Of a stretch of DNA of 64,000 nucleotides, positions 2,356 to 34,425 are shown one piece after another (positions within the stretch are counted from its first letter, which is position 1; every line of letters starts with the position of its first letter). Made by a program: the position numbers and the translations under genes. The stretch is from Macrostomum lignano. Lineage: Eukaryota. Below the pieces are notes generated by a model. It did no database searches. It was not told the DNA's origin and was given only the letters and a program-made list of their open reading frames with translations. The stretch covers positions 1 to 64,000 of the forward strand of contig NIVC01000179.1 of NCBI GenBank assembly GCA_002269645.1. The letters are read 5' to 3'.

Positions 2356-4135
2356 GCTGCTCCGCGTGCTATCATCCGGTTCCGCGACGACCTTAACGAA
2401 CAGTGGCAAAGTGAGGGCTATTTAATAAACCATAGTTATGACCTGAACGATTTTCTGAAGTGATGCGTGTTTGTGTGACTCACATCCTGGTGATGCGCAG
2501 TTCTGTACCAGCTGTTTGTAGTTGCTGTGTAGCTGAAGTTTCTGCGGGTAGCTTTATGTTGCGAGCATTACTTCAGTTGGTTTTGCGTAGCTGCATAAAG
2601 TTATTCTATCCAAGCAGCACATTACCTTTGCGTTTATTGAGAGCTTTAATATTTTTTTTGTCCGAATAACAAAAAAATGCATTTTGCTCAATCGATGTTA
2701 CCCGGTAATTTGGCTGTTGCGCCACGCATTTTCGCGCAGAAGTGACCGAAATTGTCCAAGTATTTTTCTATTTTGTGTTACACTTATTTGAGAAATTTCG
2801 CTTGCTCAAAAGAATTGACCAGACTGCAAGTCGCAGAGTTTGAATTTCGGATCGCGGCGGCCTGAAAAATCTTTCATTCTGCTCAAAATGTTAAACATCC
2901 TTAGCTAATGGCAAACTATCTACATAGTCTGGCTAATTTGCTACCTCAAGTAAGCTTGACTTAGATGCAGAGGGCATTATCCGGCGGATGCAGCGATCAG
3001 GAGGCGGAGGAGACCGCCCATTCCGCTAGCCTCTGGCGTGGCGACCATGAATGACTTCCATCGAAGTGATGTCGCTCAGGGGGGCCGTCGTCGGTCTCGC
3101 TTGCAGCACGGTCCTCCTCACCGGCGGTGGGTAAAACTCAGCTGAGGTACCGGGTGAGCATCAATATGCTCTCGGGCCTGCAATTAGCGTTGGAGGGTTT
3201 GGGCCGGGGTGAGTGAGTGGTGAAGACCGGGTAGTGGCAGATAAATTGTTCTGCGTTTTTACTGCCTGTTGAGCGGCAGAAGAGCTTGGGGCACCGCGCG
3301 CCGCTCCTCAAGTACCTGGCCCTGAAGGAAGCGGTGGCGAGAGAAGCAGCCATGCATGCCCGGAAAAGGCCCATGTACTCGTACATGTAAATGCTCTTAA
3401 GATCTTAGGCTTGAGCCTAAGGAAGGGGAGGAGACAGACAGCAAGAACAGCAAGAGCAAGAAGGGGACAGCAGCACGGGATTTCCTGCAATTTCGAGTGT
3501 CGATCGTGCCACCTGCGGAGATGCTCAGAGTCAGCCCAGTGCTTGACTCGGTAGTTGATCACCGAGGCGCATGGGTGGGGGCCCCTGGGCCCGGTCCAGA
3601 AGCCCGCTGGCGGAGCCAGCCTTGCCGGAATGGAAACCATGACATCGTGGACCGGGATCCATTAGAGCTCCACCGGTTGCCCAGCGCAAGCCCGTGGAGC
3701 CGGGCGTTGCAGTCCAGGACAGATCTGGAGTTGGTGGTGCTGCAGCAGACGGCCAGAAGGACTGCTTGACTGTCGGAGTGAAAAATAAATTTTTGACATC
3801 AAGCTAAGCTGCTATTAGGTAGTTAATAATACCTTTGCAAGCTGAACATTTAAATTTATCTCTACTTTTGCCACTTTTACTGATCGCAAGTGGATCCACA
3901 CGCAGCCGTGGAGTGGATTGAGCTACATGTAGACTAGTCCAGCGGCCCCGTGGACTGGACTAAAAAACGTATTTTACGCTTATTTAAAGAGCACTGGAAA
4001 TTCACCGAAATTGAAGCATCGATATCTCAGCAACTGCTCAATATTTTGACAAGTGGTAAAGTATATAGCTGGTGCAAAATTACTCTACCTATTATCCAGT
4101 AAAATTCTATGCGCCAAATCCATCATTTTGGGGTA

Positions 4136-4893
4136 CAAGTATGGCTCGGAAAGAAGTAAATTTTGGCGTAACTCCAGTAGTGGAAACTCCAATCGAAACT
4201 CCAACTCCAAAATCGAAACTCCAATACTGGCTGATATAAATCCAGCATCGGAGCATAAGATTGTCGCATTGTCGCACTAAACTGCACGCTAAAATCGACC
4301 ATCAATCTAAGTATTGGAGTCTGCAAGGCTCCAATGCTGAAGTTATATCAGCTCCAGTACTCGTTTCAATGCTAGAGTTTTCTTATGTTCCAATGCTGGA
4401 GTTTTCTTATGCTCCAATGCTGGATTTTTATCAGCTCCAATGCTGGAGTTATATCAGCCAGTACTGGAGTTTCGATTTTGGCACCGGAAAAGTGCAAATA
4501 ACTCTATTGGATGACCTTCTGGCGCTCTGGGACCGGCGCCAATCGACTCAGGGGCCGAAATCTATCAGAAAATGTTGGGCGCATAGGCGCGAAAGCCACT
4601 CTGCAAAATGCCAAAGATTTGTATCCCCCCAGCCTAGGTGCACTTGTCAAATTTACACCTTATCAACCTGCTGCCAGTAAAGATTCTGCAAGTAAACCGG
4701 CTGTCCTGCAACTTGCAACTAATCAAAACTACGCAAGCCGCTGAGCAGTGTCGCACCAGACTGCACGCTAAAATCGACCGTCAATCTATAAAGTATTGGA
4801 GTCTGCATATTGCAAGGCTCCAATGCTGGAGTTTCCTTTATTCCACTACACTGGAGTTATGCCAAAATGCACACTTATTTCCGAGCCATACTG
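4136..4893. mobile_element. Tc1/mariner(pogo)-type MITE, non-autonomous
   Basis: TA|CAAGTATGGCTCGGAAA... at 4134 and ...TTTCCGAGCCATACTG|TA at 4895. Imperfect TIR of about 55 bp, TA target duplication, internal degenerate CCAATGCTGGAGTT repeats and a ~90-bp internal direct repeat (about 4255 and 4745). Confidence 0.75.
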
Positions 4894-5181
4894 TACTGTA
4901 GTCCAGCTCAATCCACTCTACTCCAGTTGAACATAGAAATTTTTTTCAAGGATCTTCTCAAACGCGAGAACGGAACTGTTAGCACAACGCTGCCCAGAAT
5001 CAGGAGAATGGGCATGACAGAAGCAGCTGCAAAGAACTCATATAGTAGTGAATTCTCATGCAAGTATGAGCTCATGGAAGTATTAGCAGGAAAGTTTGTT
5101 TCAATGGTTCGACCGATCTGACAAATTTTATTTGTGTGAACCTATAGCCACTAATGTACTCGTAGTGAATAGAAGCTTTTC

Positions 5182-6095
5182 AGACCGTAAAGACGGTCTC
5201 TGACTGTTTTTACCCTGGCTGTCCTTCGTACCCGCCCTGCAGGAAAGAATGACCATTCACGAAGGTGTACGGTAGAGCCTAGTTGATGCCAGCCCTGAGG
5301 CTGTGCCCCGGGAAGCAGGGTCTCCCAACTGCTAGTAGGGTTCAGGTGCTCCTCCGTCCTGTTTTTATCCCCATTACTTGTATTGGTTTTATTAATGTAA
5401 GGCCTTTGACTGCCGCTCCAATTTTCCGGAGTAATGAGCTCTGCCCTCCCTGCCCGGTCCATCCTGCGCTGTCCTTGGTCCATCTGCTGGCTCCTCTGGT
5501 TGTCTCCCTGACTAAGTGTCTCTGGCTCTCATCCTGATAGTAGATTCGTGTCCTGGGGAATGAGTTCGTCCCGAATCGGGGATACCGGCTGAGTCCGGGT
5601 CCTCTTGCTCCTTGTGCCCCTTCCCGACCCCTTGGCCTGGCCCCCAATATTGAGCTGGATAGGCGATACCCTTGGGTTTGTAGCCGGTAGATGGGCTTCC
5701 TGCCTGGAGTCTCGCCCTCGGATACAAGCCTTCCAGACTCGCTCCAATAGTTAAGGCTTCCAAGACTTCTGGGTTTCCCCGCTCTTGGACCGGTTTCAGT
5801 AGTAACCCAAGCTAATTTTTCGTATTTTCAATTTTTTCTGCGCACTCCGAGGACTCGGTCTTAGCACCGTCGCTGATTCCACTTTTGGGTTGGCGGTGCC
5901 TTGTACCGTAGGTTTGAGTTAGTAGCACCAATGCTCCTGCTCTCACCAGAGTCCTGAGCTCTGGTCCCAATCCCAATCGTGGCCTCTCGGGCTACATGCC
6001 CCTGGTAGTATGGCCCACAGTCAGATCCCTGCGGTAGAGCCCCCTTAAGGCTGATCCGCGGTAAGCCCCTGGCTTTCTACCCCCGTTCAACAACA
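5182..6095 (+). mobile_element. Non-coding retroposon-like insertion (SINE-like) with a spliced-leader-like 5' hairpin and CAA tail
   Basis: Flanked by AATAGAAGCTTTTC (5168-5181) and AATAGAGGCTTTTTC (6096-6110), an imperfect TSD. Starts AGACCGT-AAAG-ACGGTCT (hairpin) and ends ...CCCCGTTCAACAACA. No convincing ORF. Confidence 0.62.
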
Positions 6096-7951
6096 AATAG
6101 AGGCTTTTTCCTCGGTAGAAATTCGAGCAACGGATAAAACTTACATGTAGCTCGTCAAAACTGACATTCTCTTCAATTCATCGGTGACATCATGCTGACA
6201 ACATGCGGATGGCGAGTGATCTGGTGGCGAAGCTTGAAGTTGCAGTCGTGAAGTTGAAGAGGCAACGCCTCCTCGCTGCGTCCGGATGCCCGGAACCCCT
6301 GCAGCTAAGTCAAGTAACCCTCTAACACTGTACACAACTCTCAAATCTGCGCAATAACTACATGTACATGTAGCTAGTGCATGTGCACTTGCCAAGCACA
6401 GAGAAGGCGAAACTTCTCCCCGATATTGTGCTTCTCAATTCAAATACGTATTTAAGAAATTAATAACATGCATCCCGTGTTTCCCGTTCGTTATTTTCAG
6501 CAGTACATCAGTTAGCGCCCCTCATAACTGGTGCCCCTCATACTCATGTTGGCCTCCCAAACTTGGACCGCCCCTCCCAAAAAGAAATCCTAGATCCGCC
6601 ACTGCTCGTACATGATAAGACTGACTGAATTTATTTCTACTAATATCCACCTATACTAATTATAGATCATTTGTCTTAATCGGATGGAAACAACTTACAT
6701 ATGTAAGTGTCCATGTACCAGGAAAGTCATGGCTATTTAAAAAGTGACAGGATGTCACGCTATGGGAGCACGAGACTTTTACACAGAGGCTTTTCTCGCC
6801 GAGCTTTCCTCTCATTTTTAACCAACAGGTGCTGCAGCGACAGAGGGCGAGAAGGAGAAAGGGAGGCCAAGAGGGGCAGGCAAACCATTGAGACTACTGT
6901 AATGTAAATTCATATACTTTATACATCTCGCCCTATGGCTCTACCTCCCACTATTCTTTGTGACCGTCATGTGACCATATTTGTGTCATCATCAAAAGAG
7001 AATTCGATAAAACAGGAATGTTTCAGGACAGGACAGAGTGAATTATCGTAAAAAGCATAGGTAAAAGCAATTAAGTCTGTTTTATTTTAGAGGCACATCT
7101 TCATAATATACAGTCAAGTATACACTCGTAAAACTGTACATTGACAAAAGACAATGAAAAAATATAAACAGCCAACGCTTGTCGAAAAACGCGCTGCTTA
7201 GTTCTCTCAAAGTTTGGTTAGCAAAACTCGACAGGGAGGACAAAACTGATCACAGCATTACAGAGCGGGAGAGAGAGCGTCAGCATTTGATGGTAGTGCA
7301 ATATTGCAGAGGTCATGGATTAAATGTTGTATACGCCACGGGCACAGAGAAGTGTGACTAAACATATTTATACGGCTAACAGCTAATTTCTGTGCAATGT
7401 GGCTGAATAGTCATACATGTCGTAGTCGTCACTGTCGTCTTCTTTCACCTCACGAGGATCCTGATTGCACTCTGCGTCCTGTGCATCGGCAGCAGCATAA
7501 TGCACATTGCTTAGTCTCATCTCGACACCTGCCAATGAACGAGAGAAAAAGTCCTTTTATTTAAAATGCAAATGCATGATGCAAAGTATTCCAATACAGT
7601 TCATAGCTAATTTGCATTGTTAGCACTTGATGCTGGAGTGACTATGAGCGGAGAAGCTGAATAGGTTATGTACGCGACCAAAACAATTCACTGATTTCAC
7701 TAGGAAGAAGCTAAATACGCGTAACGTGCAGAAAATCTACGCACTATTTTGTTTTAAACGACCTCATTTTTCGTATTCTGCTGATGATATTGTAGAGTGT
7801 ATAAGCGGCAGCATAAAATACACATATTTTTTTACTCACTGCTAATTCCACGCGAAGATAAATAAATGCCAAAGATCTCCTCTGAAGGAAATCGGATAAT
7901 ATGCTCCTTAATTAGTCCTTCGTTCGCCCTTAGCACTCGCAACACTCGTAG

Positions 7952-10140
7952 ATGACAGCACGCGAAGCAGCGAGCCGGCGGTCACTGCAGCAAGCGGCAG
8001 GCAGCAAACAGTCCTGCGATCGTCTCCGCTTGAGCCGGCGGTCACTGCAGCAAGCGACAGGCGGCAAACAGTCCTGCGATCGTCTCCGCTTGAGCCGGCG
8101 GTCACTGCAGCAAGCGGCAGGCAGCAAACAGTCCTGCGATCGTCTCCGCTTGAGCCGGCGGTCACTGCAGCAAGCGGCAGGCAGCAAACAGTCCTGCGAT
8201 CGTCTCCGCTTGAGCCGGCGGTCACTGCAGCAAGCGGCAGGCAGCAAACAGTCCTGCGATCGTCTCCGCTTGAGCCGGCGGTCACTGCAGTGCAGCCGAA
8301 GCGGCAGCTTTTATCGGATCCTTGCAAAATAGAATATCTTTTCTGGCATCCCAAATCCCAAATGGCTTTCATAAACGCACAGTTCCCCGTTGGAAAGCCG
8401 AATACAAAGTGCGGCGTCAGCGTTAGCTGACTCGCATGTACGCACCTGAAATGATGAGAGTGAAGCGTCTGAAGTAAAAAATGATGCATTATCTTTTTAA
8501 ATAATACCGAAACGAAACAATCTTCTCAGTTTCGAACATAAATAGAGACAGTACACAGGGGTACAGTGGGAGATAGCCTGGAAGTGGTTGCCATGGAAGG
8601 GGTAGCCTGGGAGGAGTAGCCTGGAAGGGCTGCCTGGGAGGGGTAAAGTAAGAGGGGAGCCTGAGGGGTAAAGTAGGAGGGGAGCCTGAGGGGCTGTCTG
8701 GGAGGGATGCCTAGGAGGGGTACAATGGCAGGGGTAGCCTGGGAGGGGTAGCCTAGAGAGCGTAGCTGGGAGGGGTAGAGTAGGAGGGTTAGCCTGGGAG
8801 GGGTTAGGAAGGAGGGAAGCCAGGGGTTAGTAAGGAGAAAGGCCAGGGCCAGGGGGAGAGAAGCCAGGGTCAGGGGAGGGAAGCCAGGGGTCGGGGGAGG
8901 GAAGCCAGGGGTCGGGGGAGGGAAGCCAGGGTCAGGGGAGGGAAGCCAGGGTCAGGGGAGGGAAGCCAGTGGTCAAGAGGGAGAAGCCACGCCAAGGTCA
9001 GGGGAGGGAAGCCAGAAGTCGGGGGAGAAGCCAGCGGTTAGGAGTAAAGCCAGGGGTTAGGAAGGAGGGAAGCCAGGGGTCGGGGGAGGGAAGCCAGGGT
9101 CAGGAAAGGGAAGCCAGGGTCAGGGGAGGGAAGCCAGGGTCAGGGGAGGGAAGCCAGGGTCAGGGGAGGGAAGCCAGGGTCAGGGGAGGGAAGCCAGCGG
9201 TTAGGAGTAAAGCCAGGGGTTAGGAAGGAGGGAAGCCAGGGTCAGGGGAGGGAAGCCAGGGGTCGGGAGAGAAGCCGGGGTCAGGGGAGGGAAGCCAGGG
9301 GTCAGGAGGGAAAAGCCAGGGTCAGGGGAGGGAAGCCAGGGTCAGGGGAGGGAAGCCAGGGGTCGGGAGGGAAGCCAGGGGTCGGGAGGGAAGCCAGGGT
9401 CAGGGGAGGGAAGCCAGGGGTCGGGAGGGAAGCCAGGGTCAGGGGAGGGAAGCCAGAAGTTGGGGGAGAAGCCAGCGGTTAGAAGTAAAGCCAGGGGTTA
9501 GGAAAAAGGGAAGCAAGGGGTCGGGGGAGGGAAGCCAGGGTCAGGGGAGGAAAGCCAGGGTCAGGGGAGGGAAGCCAGGGGTCGGGAGAGAAGCCAGGGT
9601 CAGGGGAGGGAAGCCAGGGGTCGGGAGAGAAACCAGGGTCAGGGGAGGGAAGCCAGGGGTCAGGAGGGAGAAGCCAGGGTCAGGGGAGGGAAGCCAGGGG
9701 TCGGGAGAGAAGCCAGGGTCAGGGGAGGGAAGCCAGGGGTTAGGAGTAAAGCCAGGGGTTAGGAAGGAGGGAAGCCAGGGGTCACGGGAGAGGGAAGCCA
9801 GGGGCCAGGAAGGAGAAGCCAAGGTCAGGGGAGGGAAGCCAGAGTCAGGGGAGGGAAGCCAGAGTCAAGGGAGGGAAGCCAGGGGTCAAGGGGAGAGAAG
9901 CCAGGGTCAGAGGAGGGAAGCCAGGGGTTAAGCGTGCAGCCAGGGGTTCGAAAGAAGGGAAGCCAGGGGTCAGGGGGAGAAGCCAAGATTAGGGGAAGGA
10001 AGTCAGGGGTCAAAGAAGGGAAGCTAGGGGTTAGGATTGAAGCCAGGGGTTAGGAGGGAGGGAAGCCAGGGTCAGGGGGGAGAGAAGCTAGGGTAGAGGG
10101 AGGAAATCCAAGGTTAGGGGAGAGAGGAACTAAAGAAAGG
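7952..10140 (-). repeat. Right arm of the long inverted repeat (about 5 copies of the 60-bp unit + unique core + about 1.3 kb of the 20-bp array)
   Basis: Reverse complement of the left-arm modules in mirrored order. The 20-bp array decays at about 10100-10140. Confidence 0.92.
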
Positions 10141-18730: not shown

Positions 18731-21569
18731 CTACACGATCGCAACTCCATCGCTCTGCCGGCTCTTCTTGTTTTTCTTCTTCTTTTTGGCTGGCGGAGCC
18801 TCGCCGTCGACGTCGGCAGCGTCGACATCGACGGTGGCATCGCCGTTGCCCTCAGCTGTCAGCTCAGATGAGACGCTCTTCGATCGCTTCTTTGCTTTCT
18901 TATTTTTCTTCTGCTTTTGCAGCTGGTCATCAGCGGCGTCGTCAGCGTCCGCATCGCCGTTGTCGACATCGACGCCGGGCTGGGCTAGCTGGGCCAGCTG
19001 GCTGTCCCGTTCGCGCTTCTTCTTTTTCTCCTTGCGTTTCAGCTTGCGCAACAGGCGGGTGCTGGCGGCCGCGGCTTCAACAACAGCGGCGGCCATCACC
19101 TCGGCATTCTTTGGCGGATTCTCGCCGCTGGCCAGGAAGGTCAGGCGGTTTTCCACCTGCCGGCGGAGGTGCTCGCCGAATACGCCCGTTGGCACCTCGC
19201 TGAATGCGTCGATGCGGGTAGCGATGGACGCCTGACGGTGGGCAATGGCGGGCGGGGGCGGTGATAGCTGTCCAATGTACCCCCCTGGTTTACGAAAGTG
19301 CAAAGCCCACTGGATGCTGGGACTGGCATTTGGGATGATGGAGCTGTGATTGGGGATGATGGAGCTGTGATTGGGGATGATGGAGCTGTGATTGGGGATG
19401 CTGGAGCTGTGATTGGGGATGATGGAGTTGTGATTGGGGATGATGGAGCTGTGATTGAGGATGATGGAGTTGTGATTGGGGATGCTGGAGCTGTGATTCG
19501 GGATGATAGAGCTGTGATTGGGGATGCTGGAGCTGTGATTGGGGGTGATGGAGCTGTGATTGAGGATGATGGAGTTGTGATTGAGGATGATGGAGTTGTG
19601 ATTGGGGATGCTGGAGTTGTGATTGGGGATGCTGGAGCAGTGATTGGGGATGATAGAGCTGTAATTTGGGATGCTGGAGCTGTAATTGGGGATGATGGAG
19701 CTGTCTTTAAAGGGCGGGCGGCGTTGCGGCTATTGCGGTGGCAACTACACAGAGAACCGATGGCTAAACGACGAATGCATGCGCAGAAACCCGTATACTG
19801 TACTGACTGTAGCAGAGCAAACACACTAAAGCAGATTAATCAAATCCGAACCTTGCTAGCCAGATAGCGAGACACCCGACCCTTGTGCTCGCGAGCCGCT
19901 TTGCCAATAAAGGTGGAATGAAAGATCAGGCCGTACTTTGGCGTATTGCCGCGAGTTTTAAGTGCCCGGAACAGGGCCTTCTCGGCGCCAAGGATTTGCA
20001 CAGTAGAGGCGGGAAATTTGGCCAGATTGACCAGAGAGCCGGCGTGGGCAATCAGCCTGGCAGCGACCTGATCGCCAATCAGAGTTGACAGATTAGGCGC
20101 CACCTGGGTCATCTTGTCAATCAGATAGGTGTGCAGCTCGCGCCTGCGCCCGATCATAGCCGAAATCCGGCTGGCAAAGTGCCGAATCTGGGCCAGATCT
20201 ATCTCGGAGATGTCCATGCCCATTGAGGAACGCATAGCGTCGTGAATAGCCTCGGCCTTGGCTGTGTCCTGCACAATGGCCTCGAGTTCGTCAGGCTTGG
20301 GCTCGGCTAAGTACTGCTTGCGATCGCCTACGTACGAGGCCACGGCCACGTAGGTTGGATTGTCCGTCACCAGGCGGACCAGTTCTGGAAAATGGTAGCC
20401 GTACCTGCACAGAGGGTGAGTGAGTGAGTATTACTGCTCATTTGATTGACAGCTTGCAGTGGCTTTTAAATAACCCATTGTGATGGGCTAGGTACACGGG
20501 ATAGGAATAGGATAAATTCATTGGGATTTGGCAGCGGCTGATCAAAGGGAATCTATTAGGATAACAGTGGCAGATCAAAGGGGATCTATTAGGATTTGGC
20601 AGTGGCTGATCAAAGGGGATCTATTAGGATAACAGTGGCAGATCAAAGGGGATCTATTAGGATTTGGCAGTGGCTGATCAAAGGGGATCTACTAGGATTT
20701 GGCAGTGGCTGATCAAAGGGGATCTACTTGTATTGGGATAGGGCAGTGGCTGATCAAAGGGGATCTACTTGTATTGGGATGGGGTAGCGGCTGATCAAAG
20801 GGGATCTATTGGGATTTGGCAGTGGCTGATCAAAGGGAATCTACTTGTATTGGGATTTGGCAGTGGCTGATCAAAGGGGATTTATTGGGATTTGGCAGTG
20901 GCTGATCAAAGGGGATCTATTGGGATTTGGCAGTGGCTGATCAAAGGGAATCTACTTGTATTGGGATGGGGCAGTCTGAATAGAAACGAACCATTCTCGA
21001 ACGCGCATAGCAAAGGTATTGATGTCCTTATCCAGCTGGTCCAGCAGGTTAATGGCCTGTATAATCATGTTATCGGCTCGGTTCACATTGAACTTGAGCT
21101 TGGCTCGGCTGTAGCCGTGGGCCAGGCCAATCTGGGCTTTGTTCTCAGCCACTAGCGACAGGCCGCGCACCAGCTTAGGGAAGTGCTGACGGCAGCAGCG
21201 GGTCAGCTCGGGAAATGAGCCGGCGGCGCTGCAGCGGACGCCCAGCTCCTCCTTGATGGAGTCGGCCAGCTTAGAGTGGCCAACCCCAAGCAGCGGCTTG
21301 CCAGTTTTGGGCAGATTGTTCTGCAGAAATGCGCGCAATTCCTCGTGCAACACGCCCTCGGAGATGGCGTTGCCGTTCTCTAGCGCGGACAGGGAGCTCT
21401 TGAACGGCGAGTAGGCGACCAGCTTGACTAGCGAATTGAATTTGCCAACATCCGAGCCGGCGGCCTCGGCCTGGGCTGAGATTAAGCCCAGCTCTTCTGT
21501 CTCTTTCACCTGGAGCAGCGCGTAACCGCTGGCGTGCTCGAATAGCAGGTAGACCGGCTCTGCCGACAT
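18731..21569 (-). CDS. NOP56: Nucleolar protein 56 (box C/D snoRNP core), 3 exons, 543 aa
   Basis: Exons 21569-20992, 20404-19852, 19231-18731; GT-AG introns with consistent phases. Motifs [87 protein letters not shown] and a Lys-rich tail. YGYHFPEL and [21 protein letters not shown] favour NOP56 over NOP58. Confidence 0.95.
19320..19705. repeat. 21-bp minisatellite (GTGATTGGGGATGATGGAGCT) in NOP56 intron 2
   Basis: Lies between the donor at 19851 and the acceptor at 19232. Confidence 0.93.
20520..20975. repeat. About 35-40-bp minisatellite (GGCAGTGGCTGATCAAAGGGGATCTATTAGGATTT) in NOP56 intron 1
   Basis: Fills most of intron 20405-20991. Confidence 0.93.
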
Positions 21570-22901
21570 TGCTGCTCTGCGGGGGTTGTTGCATAATTGC
21601 TGACTGATAGCTATTGACCTATTGTGCATGCCTGGGAATACTAATAATTAAAAATAGAGGACTTGATGTACTTTAGACGAATGAAATAACAGGCTGTACT
21701 TTTGACTGTCGGGGGGGGGGATAACAGGGCAAACTCTAAACTGTCTCAGATAACAGGGTGAACTCTAAACTGTCTCAGATAACAGGGTGAACTCTAAGCC
21801 CTAAATTTCGGTACTAGCTGATAATAAGCATATAATAAAAATGGCAAACAATATTTGAGCCAACGTCTGAAAAAATCAAAAGCTCACAAACGCCACTAGC
21901 CGACACCCGTTCAGTCCAGATGCGCTCAAGCCATCTGCTGGTCAGTAGTCAGTAGCGAAACTTTCAAACCTTTTTTATATTTCACTTGCTCTTAATTTCA
22001 ACAACAGTAATATATGTATAATATACGGATCGAACACATGAAACAGTAGGGTGAACATAAAAATTGGTTTAGTGCAAGGTACCGATTACAGTGGCAGTCA
22101 ACCAGGCACCGCCACAGCATCTAGCAGGAGAGCGGGGAATAGCATTTAAAGAATCGAAAAAAACACACAAGCTTTTATTGTCAGACTCCATCCGGACTGG
22201 GAAAGCGGCATGATAACTCCATTATTAGCTTCCAGTCCAAGTGGTTCAGGAAGGAAGTTTCCATGAAGTACATCGGGACAAGGTGAGCACAAGGCAATGC
22301 CATAGTAAAACGTGTCTGCGTTCGCGTGTGGACTGTGAGCGGATCGTACTAGATCTTATTATAGAAGTGGCTTACCCGCTGCAAACGGTACCTAGGCCAA
22401 GACTCCTACGATTCTACAACTCACGCGATGAACTCGTGATTCAACAATCGACTCTCCGTCGCATTACAGTCGATTGGGTCATTAAAAGGTCACAAGAGGT
22501 CGCCCCAGAGTTGTTTTTAAAGCCGTTTGCAACGTTATCAATGGGTTAATAGTAGTAGTTTGATGAAACAATATTTTTTTGCAATTCTTAAACTTTTGCA
22601 ACGTGCTTTGAAGATCAATTTAGGCGAGAAAATAGGTCAGCTACTAGCATCGATGGGTACAAACAGAGTCAACCAAGAAACTCAGAGACAATTTCGATAG
22701 AAGCTGAGTAAAGCGTGCTACCTGCTGATTTAGCGTAGAATTTTTCCCACCAAAAAATAAACAAGCGAAAAATGTATGAATGACTTTTGCTATGTCTGCA
22801 GACACGCACACAGTTTCAACAAGCGCAAACAATTTAACACGGAAGTTAATTTGAATTAGTGCCAACAACAAACTGACAAATTGAGCCGGGCGCGCTCAAG
22901 C

Positions 22902-31899: not shown

Positions 31900-32559
31900 T
31901 GAAATTTTCTCGCGCAGGGCACCGACGATCTGGACAAGAGGATCGCCCGTCAGGAGAAGCTGCTTCGGCTGAAGACTCTTCAACGCCAGACTGCTGAGAT
32001 CGAGGCTGAGCTGGAGAACAAGCCTTGCCAACAGAGCCGTAAGTTGCGGAGCCCCTTGCCGATTGACCGGTCCCCTGCTGCCTATGAGCCGGAGCTGGGA
32101 CTACCAGAACTGGGCCTTCAAGGCCTCTACAGCACTTCCGCCAGGCCGTCGGGACCGTCAAAGCCCCTTCTGGTAAAGGACTTTATCAACCGTGATGGCG
32201 AGGAGCCTGCCTCTGGCGAGAGGTCCAGATTCCGGACTGAGCAGATCTCGGCGGGTCAGTGGGTAGCAGGCAGCAACCGAATCCTGCTGAAAATCCTCGA
32301 CGAGGGGTCCTTGGTCACCGCTAAGGATGGCGCGGTGGATCTTGAACAGCTGAAGGCCTACGTTCGCTACTGTGTGCAGTTCGGCGAGTTTATGCACCAG
32401 GGTTTCAGTCAGGCCGCCCTCAACTGTTACGATGAAGACTTCAGGATTCTGCAACATCAGTCGAGCGGCAGCTGGGAGCGGGAGTCGCTGCAGCTGCTAT
32501 CCAAGCACATTCTGGCACCAAAGTCAAATCAGGGCGGCAACGCGATCTTCAAAAACTAG
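31900..32559 (+). pseudogene. gag-like ORF1 of the DIRS/Ngaro element
   Basis: Frame open from about 31900 (GTDDLDKRIARQEKLLRLK...) to the stop at 32559; QWVAGSNRIL...YDEDFRILQ...W pattern; no ATG found at the 5' end. Confidence 0.7.
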
Positions 32560-32669
32560 ATCGCGGCCGGCCGGGGGGCTCAACTGGCAGCGCAGCTGCC
32601 CTGGCGGAAGCCAAAGTCGAACCCCTGCTGCCCCCCGGCTGGCCCTGTCCCAAGCCCCTCGAGTCCGTC

Positions 32670-33605
32670 GCTTTCTCATCCGACCTCGCCACAGCCGCCT
32701 GGGAAACTGAGCTGACTGACGATCCTGACCGCGAATTCCTGCTGAATGGCATCCGCAACGGCTTCCAACTCACCTGCCCTGACCCGTCAGAAAGAGCCTC
32801 AACTATGTCAGAAATCCAGAACTAGCTATCAGTCAACAGTTACCGGCAGCTGGTCGAGCAGCAGGTGCAAGAGGAAATCCTTAATGGCCGCTACGTTCAA
32901 GTCAGTGACAAACCGGAGGTCATCAGCGCCCTTGGCACCATTCCGAAGGGCAACAACAAGATTCGACTCATCCACGACTGCTCTAACCCTCCGGGTCTCT
33001 CCCTAAACAGGCGATTTTCTTCCGACTACAGAATCAAGTTCGAGACCGTCAGTCACTTCACCGCCAAGCTGCAACCCGGTTGGTTCATAGCCAAAGTCGA
33101 CCTCGCCAATGCCTACCGGAGTGTCGGCATCAGCCCGCACGATTTTCGGCTCACCGGCTTGAAGTGGAAATTCAGCGACCAGCGCAGCGATTCGTACATC
33201 TGCGACACGCGGCTCCCCTTTGGCGCTGCTGCCTCCGTGGAAGTTTTCCACCGTCTGAGCCAGGCCGTCAAGCGCATGATGCAGAGACGGGGCTTCAACG
33301 ATATCGGCAGTTATCTCGACGACTTCGCCATAGCAGCCTCCAGCAAGGACGACTGCCAGCTCGCTCTCGACACCCTGCTCAATCTGCTGCGGAAGCTTGG
33401 CTTCTCCATCAACTGGAGCAAGGTGGTGGCGCCGTGCACCAGACTGGTCTACCTGGGCGTCCTCATCGACACCGTCAGCGGCCTGCTGGAGCTTCCGAAG
33501 GAAAAGCTCGACGCCACCAAGTCTCAGCTGCAGTACGCGCTCTCTCGCGAGCGCATCACCAAGCGCCAACTCCAATCGCTCTGTGGCCGCATCAACTGGG
33601 TCTGA
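32670..33605 (+). pseudogene. Reverse transcriptase of the DIRS/Ngaro element, disrupted
   Basis: In-frame TAG at 32823-32825 interrupts the N-terminus. The RT core 32865-33605 has YLDDF and stops at LCGRINWV, where RNase H should follow. Confidence 0.9.
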
Positions 33606-34425
33606 TGGTCGCGCACTACATCATCGCGCTGTCCGACCGCCTCTCCTCGCATGCCAGCGTCGGTGCGTACAATAACGCCGCAGACCTGCACTACAAGCTC
33701 AAGACCGGCCGCGGCCTTCCTCGCGACTCCCGCATCGACCTGCTCCTCCGCGGTGTGCAGCGCAAACTCGCCAAGCCACCGGCGCGCAAGGCGCCCAAGG
33801 TGACCTCCTCAAACTGCGAGGAACCCTGCGCCTGCAGCAGCCTCAAGATGCAGCCTTCTGGGCGGCGGTCCTGGTCGGATTCTGGGGCCTCCTGTGCCGC
33901 GCCAATCTGTGCTGCTCGAAACCGTTCCCACCAGCTGGCGAGGCGGTCACCTGCGGCGACCTGCAAGTATCACCGGATCTGGTCATCCTGCACATTTGGC
34001 GCTCCAAGACGAACCAGTACCGCCAGCGAGTGCAGCGCGTTGTCCTGCCGCGCCTCCGGCACGCGTCGCAGCACCCGCTCTGCCCCGTGGCAGCGCTGCT
34101 TCACCACCTGCGCATCAACCAGCCCGACCGCGCCGCTGCTGCCCACCTCTTCGCCTACCGAAGCAGCAGCGGCCTGACGCCTCTGACCGGCACCCGGTTC
34201 TGTCGCCTGTTTCAGCACGTCGTCCACCGTGCCGGCCTGGCAGACCGGTCTCTGTCTCCTCACAGCCTTCGACGCGGCGGCGCCTCGCTGGCTTTCCGCG
34301 CCGGTGTCCCGCTGCCGGTCGTCAAGGCCCTGGCCGACTGGCGGAGCTCGGCGGTTGAGGTGTACCTGGGGCTGGAAAAGGGCTTCGACCTCCAGCTGGC
34401 GGCTGTTCGCAAACTGTCTCAATGA
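33605..34425 (+). pseudogene. Tyrosine recombinase of the DIRS/Ngaro element, N-truncated and frameshifted
   Basis: The frame change near 33800 joins ...LLLRGVQRKLAKPPARKAP to DLLKLRGTL...GFWGLLCRANL...HSLRRGG...WRSSAVEVY. Confidence 0.88.

Follow-up and report, generated by a model that had tools for sequence, protein, structure and literature searches.

The bipartite chimeric U6-L1 retrocopies of mammals, and MINE in Magnaporthe, arise by template switching of the reverse transcriptase. Among short interspersed elements (SINEs) there are families headed by small nuclear RNA (snRNA), namely SINEU with its U1 or U2 heads, and there is SINE3, which has a 5S head with an internal promoter. Transcripts of the elements SLACS, CZAR, CRE1 and NeSL-1 can start with the first nucleotides of the spliced leader (SL), and those of SLACS start at +1 of the interrupted SL gene. 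SL exons are the targets of these elements, in trypanosomatids for the first three and in nematodes for NeSL-1 (PMC4640811). Transcripts of transposable elements (TEs) in Hydra carry SLs (PMC12220107), dinoflagellate retrogenes hold relict leaders (cited in PMC12582326) and in parasitic flatworms a survey published in 2025 set aside 597 loci with partial leaders beside long interspersed elements (LINEs) or long terminal repeat (LTR) elements (PMC12582326). Given these 597 loci, leader fragments joined to retroelements are not new in flatworms. Here we describe such a junction in the flatworm Macrostomum lignano, at the 5′ end of a 914-nt insert. The window analysed is a stretch of 64,000 nt (contig NIVC01000179.1, positions 1 to 64,000 of the forward strand) and all coordinates refer to it unless another sequence is named. 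An earlier account made from the letters of the window only, referred to below as the sequence-only reading, had proposed an SL-RNA-derived SINE with a head of a type not known to it as a described class; in view of the partial leaders above, that head is less unprecedented than it had supposed.

The insert occupies 5182–6095, is non-coding, is foreign in composition relative to its surroundings and carries, three bases inside its left boundary, a close match to nucleotides 2–23 of the Macrostomum SL. Its parts and flanking repeats are as follows.

5168–5181, plus strand: left copy of the target-site duplication, AATAGAAGCTTTTC, 14 nt
5182–5184, plus strand: AGA, three additional bases that separate the target duplication from the SL sequence
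5185–5206, plus strand: SL-derived head, nt 2–23 of the Macrostomum spliced leader, 21/22 identical, with T to G at 5202
5207–6087, plus strand: non-coding body, C+T-rich on this strand and unrelated to the remaining SL RNA
5231–5333, minus strand: stretch copied elsewhere in M. lignano, its antisense translation corresponding to residues 299–336 of A0A1I8FPY2 (P0122)
6088–6095, plus strand: short 3′ tail, CAACAACA
6096–6110, plus strand: right copy of the target-site duplication, AATAGAGGCTTTTTC, 15 nt

The insertion and its spliced-leader head

The 5′ end of the insert is AGA followed by CCGTAAAGACGGTCTCTGACTG and its 3′ end is CAACAACA, which reads as (CAA)3 when the first AA of the target duplication is included. 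The two copies of the duplication differ by one substitution and one additional T. An unanchored search is a poor guide to such a repeat, 14% of shuffles yielding a 14-mer direct repeat with ≤2 edits within 3 kb of an anchor. With the boundaries set independently of the repeat, one where the SL head starts and the other where the CAA repeat stops, the abutting 20-mers gave a better alignment than 99.95% of random pairs drawn from that region (P ~ 5e-4). A period-3 8-mer was found immediately 5′ of only 0.2% of window positions. The GC content is 0.55 inside the insert versus 0.44 in the flanks, with a step at both boundaries, and a strong excess of T over A (AT skew −0.3 to −0.47) is confined to the interior of the insert. 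Taking the anchored repeat, the period-3 tail and the composition steps together, a target-duplicated insertion is the sole reasonable reading of 5182–6095. On this point the sequence-only reading, which had described a retroposon-like, target-duplicated and non-coding insertion, was borne out, and the features it had listed (direct repeats, insert, tail, terminal hairpin, nested pairing and lack of a credible open reading frame (ORF)) were all recovered in place.

Insertions that depend on a LINE, through target-primed reverse transcription (TPRT), are flanked as a whole by a duplication of ~7–20 nt and have poly(A) or a short simple-repeat tail abutting the right-hand copy. Both are seen here, though the tail is short. 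According to the sequence-only reading, CAA tails occur in LINEs of the RTE clade. The two differences per 15 nt of duplication, with one per 22 nt of head, indicate that the insertion event is old. The flanks are unique within the window so there is no paralogous empty site in the 64 kb; the sequence to be expected of the pre-insertion (empty) site is GTAGTGAATAGAAGCTTTTCCTCGGTAG. A Pfam search in six frames of the joined flanks (2400–7900) found no domain. The surrounding 5.5 kb being without Pfam domains, the insertion site is therefore intergenic or otherwise non-coding.

The published M. lignano leader is the 35-mer CGGTCTCTTACTGCGAAGACTCAATTTATTGCATG (PMC8629364). The M. cliftonense leader is GCCGTAAAGACGGTCTCTTACTGCGAAGACTCAATTTATTGCATG, and leaders assembled for two congeners carry further 5′ sequence, GCCGTAAAGACGG... 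(PMC10468722 supplement). The Macrostomum SL sequence given in the sequence-only reading is thus correct, and its count of 21 matches in 22 positions holds for the published leaders. None of 100 shuffles matched the leader, even when ≤3 mismatches were allowed, and the analytic expectation for the 22-mer match is ~5e-7 per window. A calibration scan of the 17-mer core in 596 Gb of prokaryotic DNA gave 43 matches compared with ~69 expected by chance, and a scan of viral contigs gave chance matches only.

An exact-pattern scan of metagenome contigs with the SL 22-mer returned one contig, Ga0302322_100095745 (L001). The SL RNA gene at positions 615–722 of L001, ctttGCCGTAAAGACGGTCTCTTACTGCGAAGACTCAATTTATTGCATG/GTAAGACACC..., is complete and of the Macrostomum type. 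Its leader is identical to that published, it has a GTAAG donor and a U-rich Sm-like site, and it forms three hairpins and folds with a z-score of −3.0. The gene adjoins an unannotated ORF. Its occurrence shows Macrostomum-like flatworm DNA in a JGI environmental metagenome.

The 22-mer of the insert is also 21/22 identical to this genuine SL RNA gene, and a local alignment of the whole L001 SL RNA with the insert recovered just these 22 nt. When the remaining SL RNA was aligned to the insert body the best match was a 10-mer, no more than chance would give (p = 0.13). A search of the whole window for the leader's 3′ half found nothing, and alignment to the L001 gene showed the insert to be without the leader AUG, the GU splice donor, the Sm site and the downstream SL RNA hairpins. 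Since only SL nt 2–23 are present and the rest is at chance level, the segment is neither an SL RNA gene nor an SL RNA pseudogene; judged by these alignments, the head is the cap-proximal half of the leader and no more. The junction thus falls in the middle of the leader and lacks the 3′ half, AUG, donor and Sm site, therefore the fusion was not made by trans-splicing. No SL gene was found within the 64-kb window.

The insert opens with a 7-bp hairpin, AGACCGT-AAAG-ACGGTCT (5182–5199). A nested pairing of CCTTCGT...ACGAAGG around GAATG-AC-CATTC is also present and is found in the minimum-energy fold, but the fold of the first 149 nt is no better than that of shuffles (z = −1.44) and these pairings were given no weight. 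The extra bases AGA pair with TCT at 5197–5199 and so extend the SL hairpin from 4 to 7 bp. They are not leader sequence in the SL RNA gene on L001, which has ctttG before CCGT rather than AGA. The 3′ end of a complementary DNA (cDNA) copied from the leader folds into a hairpin of 4 bp whose 3′ end is recessed, and a self-primed extension of 3 nt yields AGA exactly; three bases taken at random would lengthen the stem with a probability of 1/64, by simple arithmetic. Because AGA fits such a snap-back extension, it supports a template that ended at the leader's true 5′ end.

The body of the insert and its second copy

Pfam found no domain in six frames of the insert, there was no credible ORF and a search with ARAGORN found no tRNA in it. 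Rfam gave no match at the gathering score anywhere in the window and, at E up to 10, gave just SNORD23 in 5100–6200, at 15.8 bits compared with a gathering score of 64. Since Rfam is without a match, hammerhead and HDV-like ribozyme, 5S, 7SL and snRNA modules are excluded from the insert. A six-frame protein search with the whole insert found no match among the best 8000 candidates, a result which carries no weight.

Directly after the SL 22-mer, 5207–5243 is a pyrimidine-rich tract ending CTGCAG/G. The trans-splice acceptor motif of M. lignano is [T/C]TNCAG (PMC8629364). The tract fits this motif and looks like an unspliced acceptor sequence.

Within the window, blastn at word size 7 found no second copy of the insert and nothing else with the same 3′ end. 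When the 110-aa antisense ORF of the insert was used as the query, an exhaustive HMMER search retrieved P0122, which is UniRef A0A1I8FPY2 of M. lignano, and one stretch of the match is identical at 15/15 residues. An 11-nt tandem duplication, of CCGTACACCTT, accounts exactly for the frame change between the two matching stretches of P0122. On the minus strand of 5231–5350, the acceptor-like aaaaacag/G and the donor-like GG/gtacga bound the matching stretch. The remaining ~390 residues of P0122 have no match in the window and so it represents a different locus; the element's body is thus repeated and dispersed in M. lignano, with at least one further partial copy. Among the gene models of M. 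lignano a single one overlaps, in any frame, with the first 219 nt of the insert, which hints, weakly, that the copy number is modest and not huge. A0A1I8FPY2 is annotated as 'Troponin T', and the repeat fragment within it looks like an antisense exonisation or a mis-annotated exon.

Another candidate relative of the antisense ORF was judged compositional or spurious. This was P0121, an ENA metagenome protein of 1432 aa made up of 14 tandem repeats of ~88 aa, with 30% identity and a summed E-value of 4e-14 against the ORF. Probably the match is an artefact of composition, the repeat being tandem and GC-rich.

Possible origins of the insert

The reading we favour, and to which we give an even chance, is that the insert is an old, inactive copy of a LINE-dependent, non-coding, dispersed retroposon whose 5′ end was acquired from SL RNA. 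A LINE reverse transcriptase would have primed on a nicked target and copied the retroposon RNA by TPRT, and at this intergenic, repeat-rich site the reaction would leave the 14–15-nt target duplication and the short CAA-repeat 3′ end. On reaching the 5′ end of the retroposon RNA the enzyme may have switched to SL RNA, or to an SL-capped RNA, and copied it to the capped end, which would join SL nt 2–23 directly to unrelated sequence. At its 3′ end the cDNA could then have snapped back on the CCGT/ACGG hairpin of the leader and been extended by 3 nt to give AGA. The jump between templates may have been made either during this insertion or once in a master copy. We infer TPRT, template switching and snap-back from the arrangement of the insert, and template switching is the most economical origin of its 5′ end. 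SINEs with snRNA heads could also be founded in this way. In chimeras formed by a template switch the 5′ part begins at the snRNA +1 or within 1–2 nt of it and has the same orientation as the 3′ part. This is the arrangement observed here, where the match starts at SL nt 2 after the three extra bases. Their 3′ part is copied from a retroelement or mRNA that exists independently, often with a truncated 5′ end; of the body of the insert at least one further copy, a partial one, is dispersed in M. lignano.

Several points weigh against this origin. No partner LINE was found, the window alone having been searched for a shared 3′ end. The 5′ terminus of the element is defined from this single copy, the 5′ end of the second copy not being visible. 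The tail is just 8 nt long and the target duplication carries two differences. Jumps of the U6-L1 type usually land on the 3′ end of the small RNA, whereas the junction here is internal, at nt 23. Lastly, a template switch leaves no diagnostic trace without the sequence of the parental element.

The strongest competitor, possible though on the unlikely side, is a true SL-derived SINE-like family in which all full-length copies begin AGACCGTAAAGACGG and the SL 5′ stem-loop is a selected head. Such a family-wide head might be an intragenic element of a polymerase II promoter of the SL or snRNA type, or it might be a recognition or stability signal. The 22-nt SL sequence of Ascaris, according to Hannon et al. 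in 1990, is reportedly an intragenic promoter element of the SL RNA gene. The repeated body of the insert speaks for a family, as does the position of the head exactly at the 5′ boundary given by the target duplication; in terms of expected counts, moreover, a family member should be met in a window more readily than a sporadic chimera. SINEs with snRNA heads also provide a precedent. Against this, no second headed copy was seen, and the one gene model over the first 219 nt does not suggest a very high copy number. The 22-nt piece is without the donor and Sm sites, and the promoter, being upstream, would not have been carried along. Classical SINEs have a tRNA, 7SL or 5S head with an internal polymerase III promoter and a length of ~80–600 nt. 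The insert is non-coding, as a SINE would be, but contains neither such a head nor a polymerase III module and, at 914 nt, is long for a SINE. The SL-RNA-derived SINE of the sequence-only reading therefore holds in part: the 5′ end comes from the SL 5′ end and the body is repeated, whereas the classical head and module are absent and the insert is long for a SINE. A stronger form of the claim, that M. lignano has a retroposon family with the cap-proximal SL RNA hairpin as its consensus 5′ end, and hence a new class of SINE head, is a little more doubtful still; the 22-nt piece would then be an intragenic promoter element or a mimic of SL-capped RNAs.

A much slimmer chance attaches to an origin from a resident of the SL genes. 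A master element would lie after nt 23 of the SL exon, with a sequence beginning TTTTTACCCTGG, and would be driven by the SL promoter so that its RNA would start with SL nt 1–23. The copy in the window would be an off-target, non-autonomous derivative. This would account for the sharp mid-leader junction and for the retention of the cap-proximal part, and site-specific non-LTR elements are known to target SL exons (PMC4640811). The ~8 SL RNA genes reported in the deduplicated M. lignano assembly neither help nor harm it; intact leaders were required in that count, which is silent on interrupted genes (PMC8629364). However, the flanks and target duplication of the insert are unlike the SL sequence around nt 23, the element encodes nothing and the window holds no SL gene. 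SL-gene-specific LINEs have SL-gene flanks and encode a reverse transcriptase and endonuclease, and neither property was found here. The NeSL-like relic that the sequence-only reading had offered as its alternative consequently does not fit this copy, the slim chance just mentioned being that of a master still resident in an SL gene.

It is less probable again that the insert is a retrocopy of an SL trans-spliced TE or long non-coding RNA in which the 3′ half of the leader was lost later or skipped. TE transcripts in Hydra are trans-spliced (PMC12220107), and the partial leaders near TEs were read in this way by the authors of the flatworm survey (PMC12582326). Such a retrocopy should have the leader's 3′ end (…UUGCAUG) joined at the former acceptor. 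Here the junction comes after SL nt 23 and it is the 5′ half that is retained, whereas 5′ truncation would leave the 3′ half. Identity to the leader is 95% over the first 22 nt and the next 22 nt have no similarity to it, therefore decay cannot explain the loss of the 3′ half. The unspliced acceptor-like pyrimidine tract with CTGCAG/G, directly after the SL piece, also argues against a spliced source.

Coincidence or mis-delimitation, meaning a chance or convergent hairpin inside a larger repeat with a fortuitous direct repeat around it, can draw on the ease with which free 14-mer repeats arise in shuffles and on the single copy in the window, but it is barely credible when set against the absence of the SL match from every shuffle, the anchored duplication, the composition steps falling on both boundaries and the chance-level frequency of the 17-mer core in prokaryotic DNA.

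A one-off and a family-wide head differ in what other copies should look like. If the acquisition of the leader was a one-off event, full-length copies start TTTTTACC... without the SL piece, and the insert is a natural record of template switching onto SL RNA. SL RNA would then enter retrotransposition in a free-living flatworm as U6 does in mammals. If it is family-wide, many copies start AGACCGTAAAG..., the jump is ancestral and the SINE reading gains. This would be the first SINE-like family built on spliced-leader RNA and would link SL trans-splicing to the amplification of retroposons. The mode of transcription of the element and any intragenic promoter activity of flatworm leaders would become testable, as would the share of the flatworm 'partial leader' loci that came by this route compared with retro-integration. 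Leader-like 22-mers in repeats can also mislead annotation, both in SL-RNA gene finding and in the mapping of SL reads.

Surroundings of the insert and comparison with known systems

The 64-kb window is rich in minisatellites (76 TRF rows) and contains genes for Nop56, an EF-Tu-type GTPase, an EXPERA/TMEM97-like protein and a C2-domain protein. An inverted repeat, at 1–2400 and 7970–10120, flanks a unique region of 5.6 kb that contains the insert. Between its arms, 933–1680 and 7972–8719 are 100% complementary over 748 nt, and each arm carries a 20-mer satellite (CCTGACCCCTGGCTTCCCTCC), a 14/27-mer repeat and a 60-mer minisatellite. The inverted repeat may represent a foldback-type element or a large palindromic duplication, or it may be an artefact of assembly. 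A link between the 3′ end of the insert and the 20-mer satellite was considered and dismissed as chance (p ~ 0.35–0.4).

A reverse-transcriptase ORF lies at 32044–34400 in a GC-rich (0.60) block, with a match to Pfam RVT_1 (E = 2e-16) and a YLDD motif. By eye it is of the DIRS/Ngaro or LTR type rather than a LINE, and it is unrelated to the insert. The Nop56 gene occupies 18731–21629 on the minus strand and the best UniRef match of its first exon is A0A1I8IY79, also of M. lignano. The two agree at 83% overall and at 100% in blocks between frameshift-type garbage. The overall figure is misleading, and the window is of M. lignano itself rather than of another species. As A0A1I8IY79 differs from the translation of the window by frameshift-type blocks only, this points to indel errors in the older assembly behind it.

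Among the described systems the SL-targeting elements share with the insert a biology tied to the SL exon. SLACS, CZAR, CRE1 and NeSL-1 are autonomous elements that reside inside SL genes and code for a reverse transcriptase together with a restriction-like endonuclease, whereas the insert is non-coding and lies in unrelated sequence. SINEU and SINE3 resemble it in being non-coding retroposons with a head from a small structured RNA that is neither tRNA nor 7SL. These, however, have been demonstrated to be families of many copies, with heads that cover most of the RNA they came from, in contrast to the 22 nt and the single headed copy found here, and the insert is without the internal polymerase III promoter of SINE3.

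The partial-leader loci of parasitic flatworms are similar in that leader sequence lies beside a retroelement, in an animal with SL trans-splicing, and is accompanied by no other feature of the SL RNA. They were attributed to the retro-integration of transcripts that had been trans-spliced, from which the whole leader or its 3′ part would be expected. The insert, in a free-living macrostomid, has the 5′ half alone and a mid-leader fusion to unspliced-looking sequence. In anatomy the insert is a bipartite chimera of small RNA and retroelement. The U6-L1 chimeras likewise have a 5′ part that starts at the capped 5′ end of an abundant snRNA, a 3′ part from an unrelated retroelement, one duplication around the whole and nothing between the parts. 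They differ from the insert in the RNA, here SL RNA represented by its first 22–23 nt only where U6 chimeras usually hold the whole of U6, and in the tail, here a CAA repeat and not poly(A). What is particular to the insert is that the 5′ half of the leader forms the exact 5′ terminus of a target-duplicated non-coding element, in a fusion that trans-splicing does not explain. Set beside these systems, it looks like a rare chimeric retroposon rather than a proven new class of SINE.

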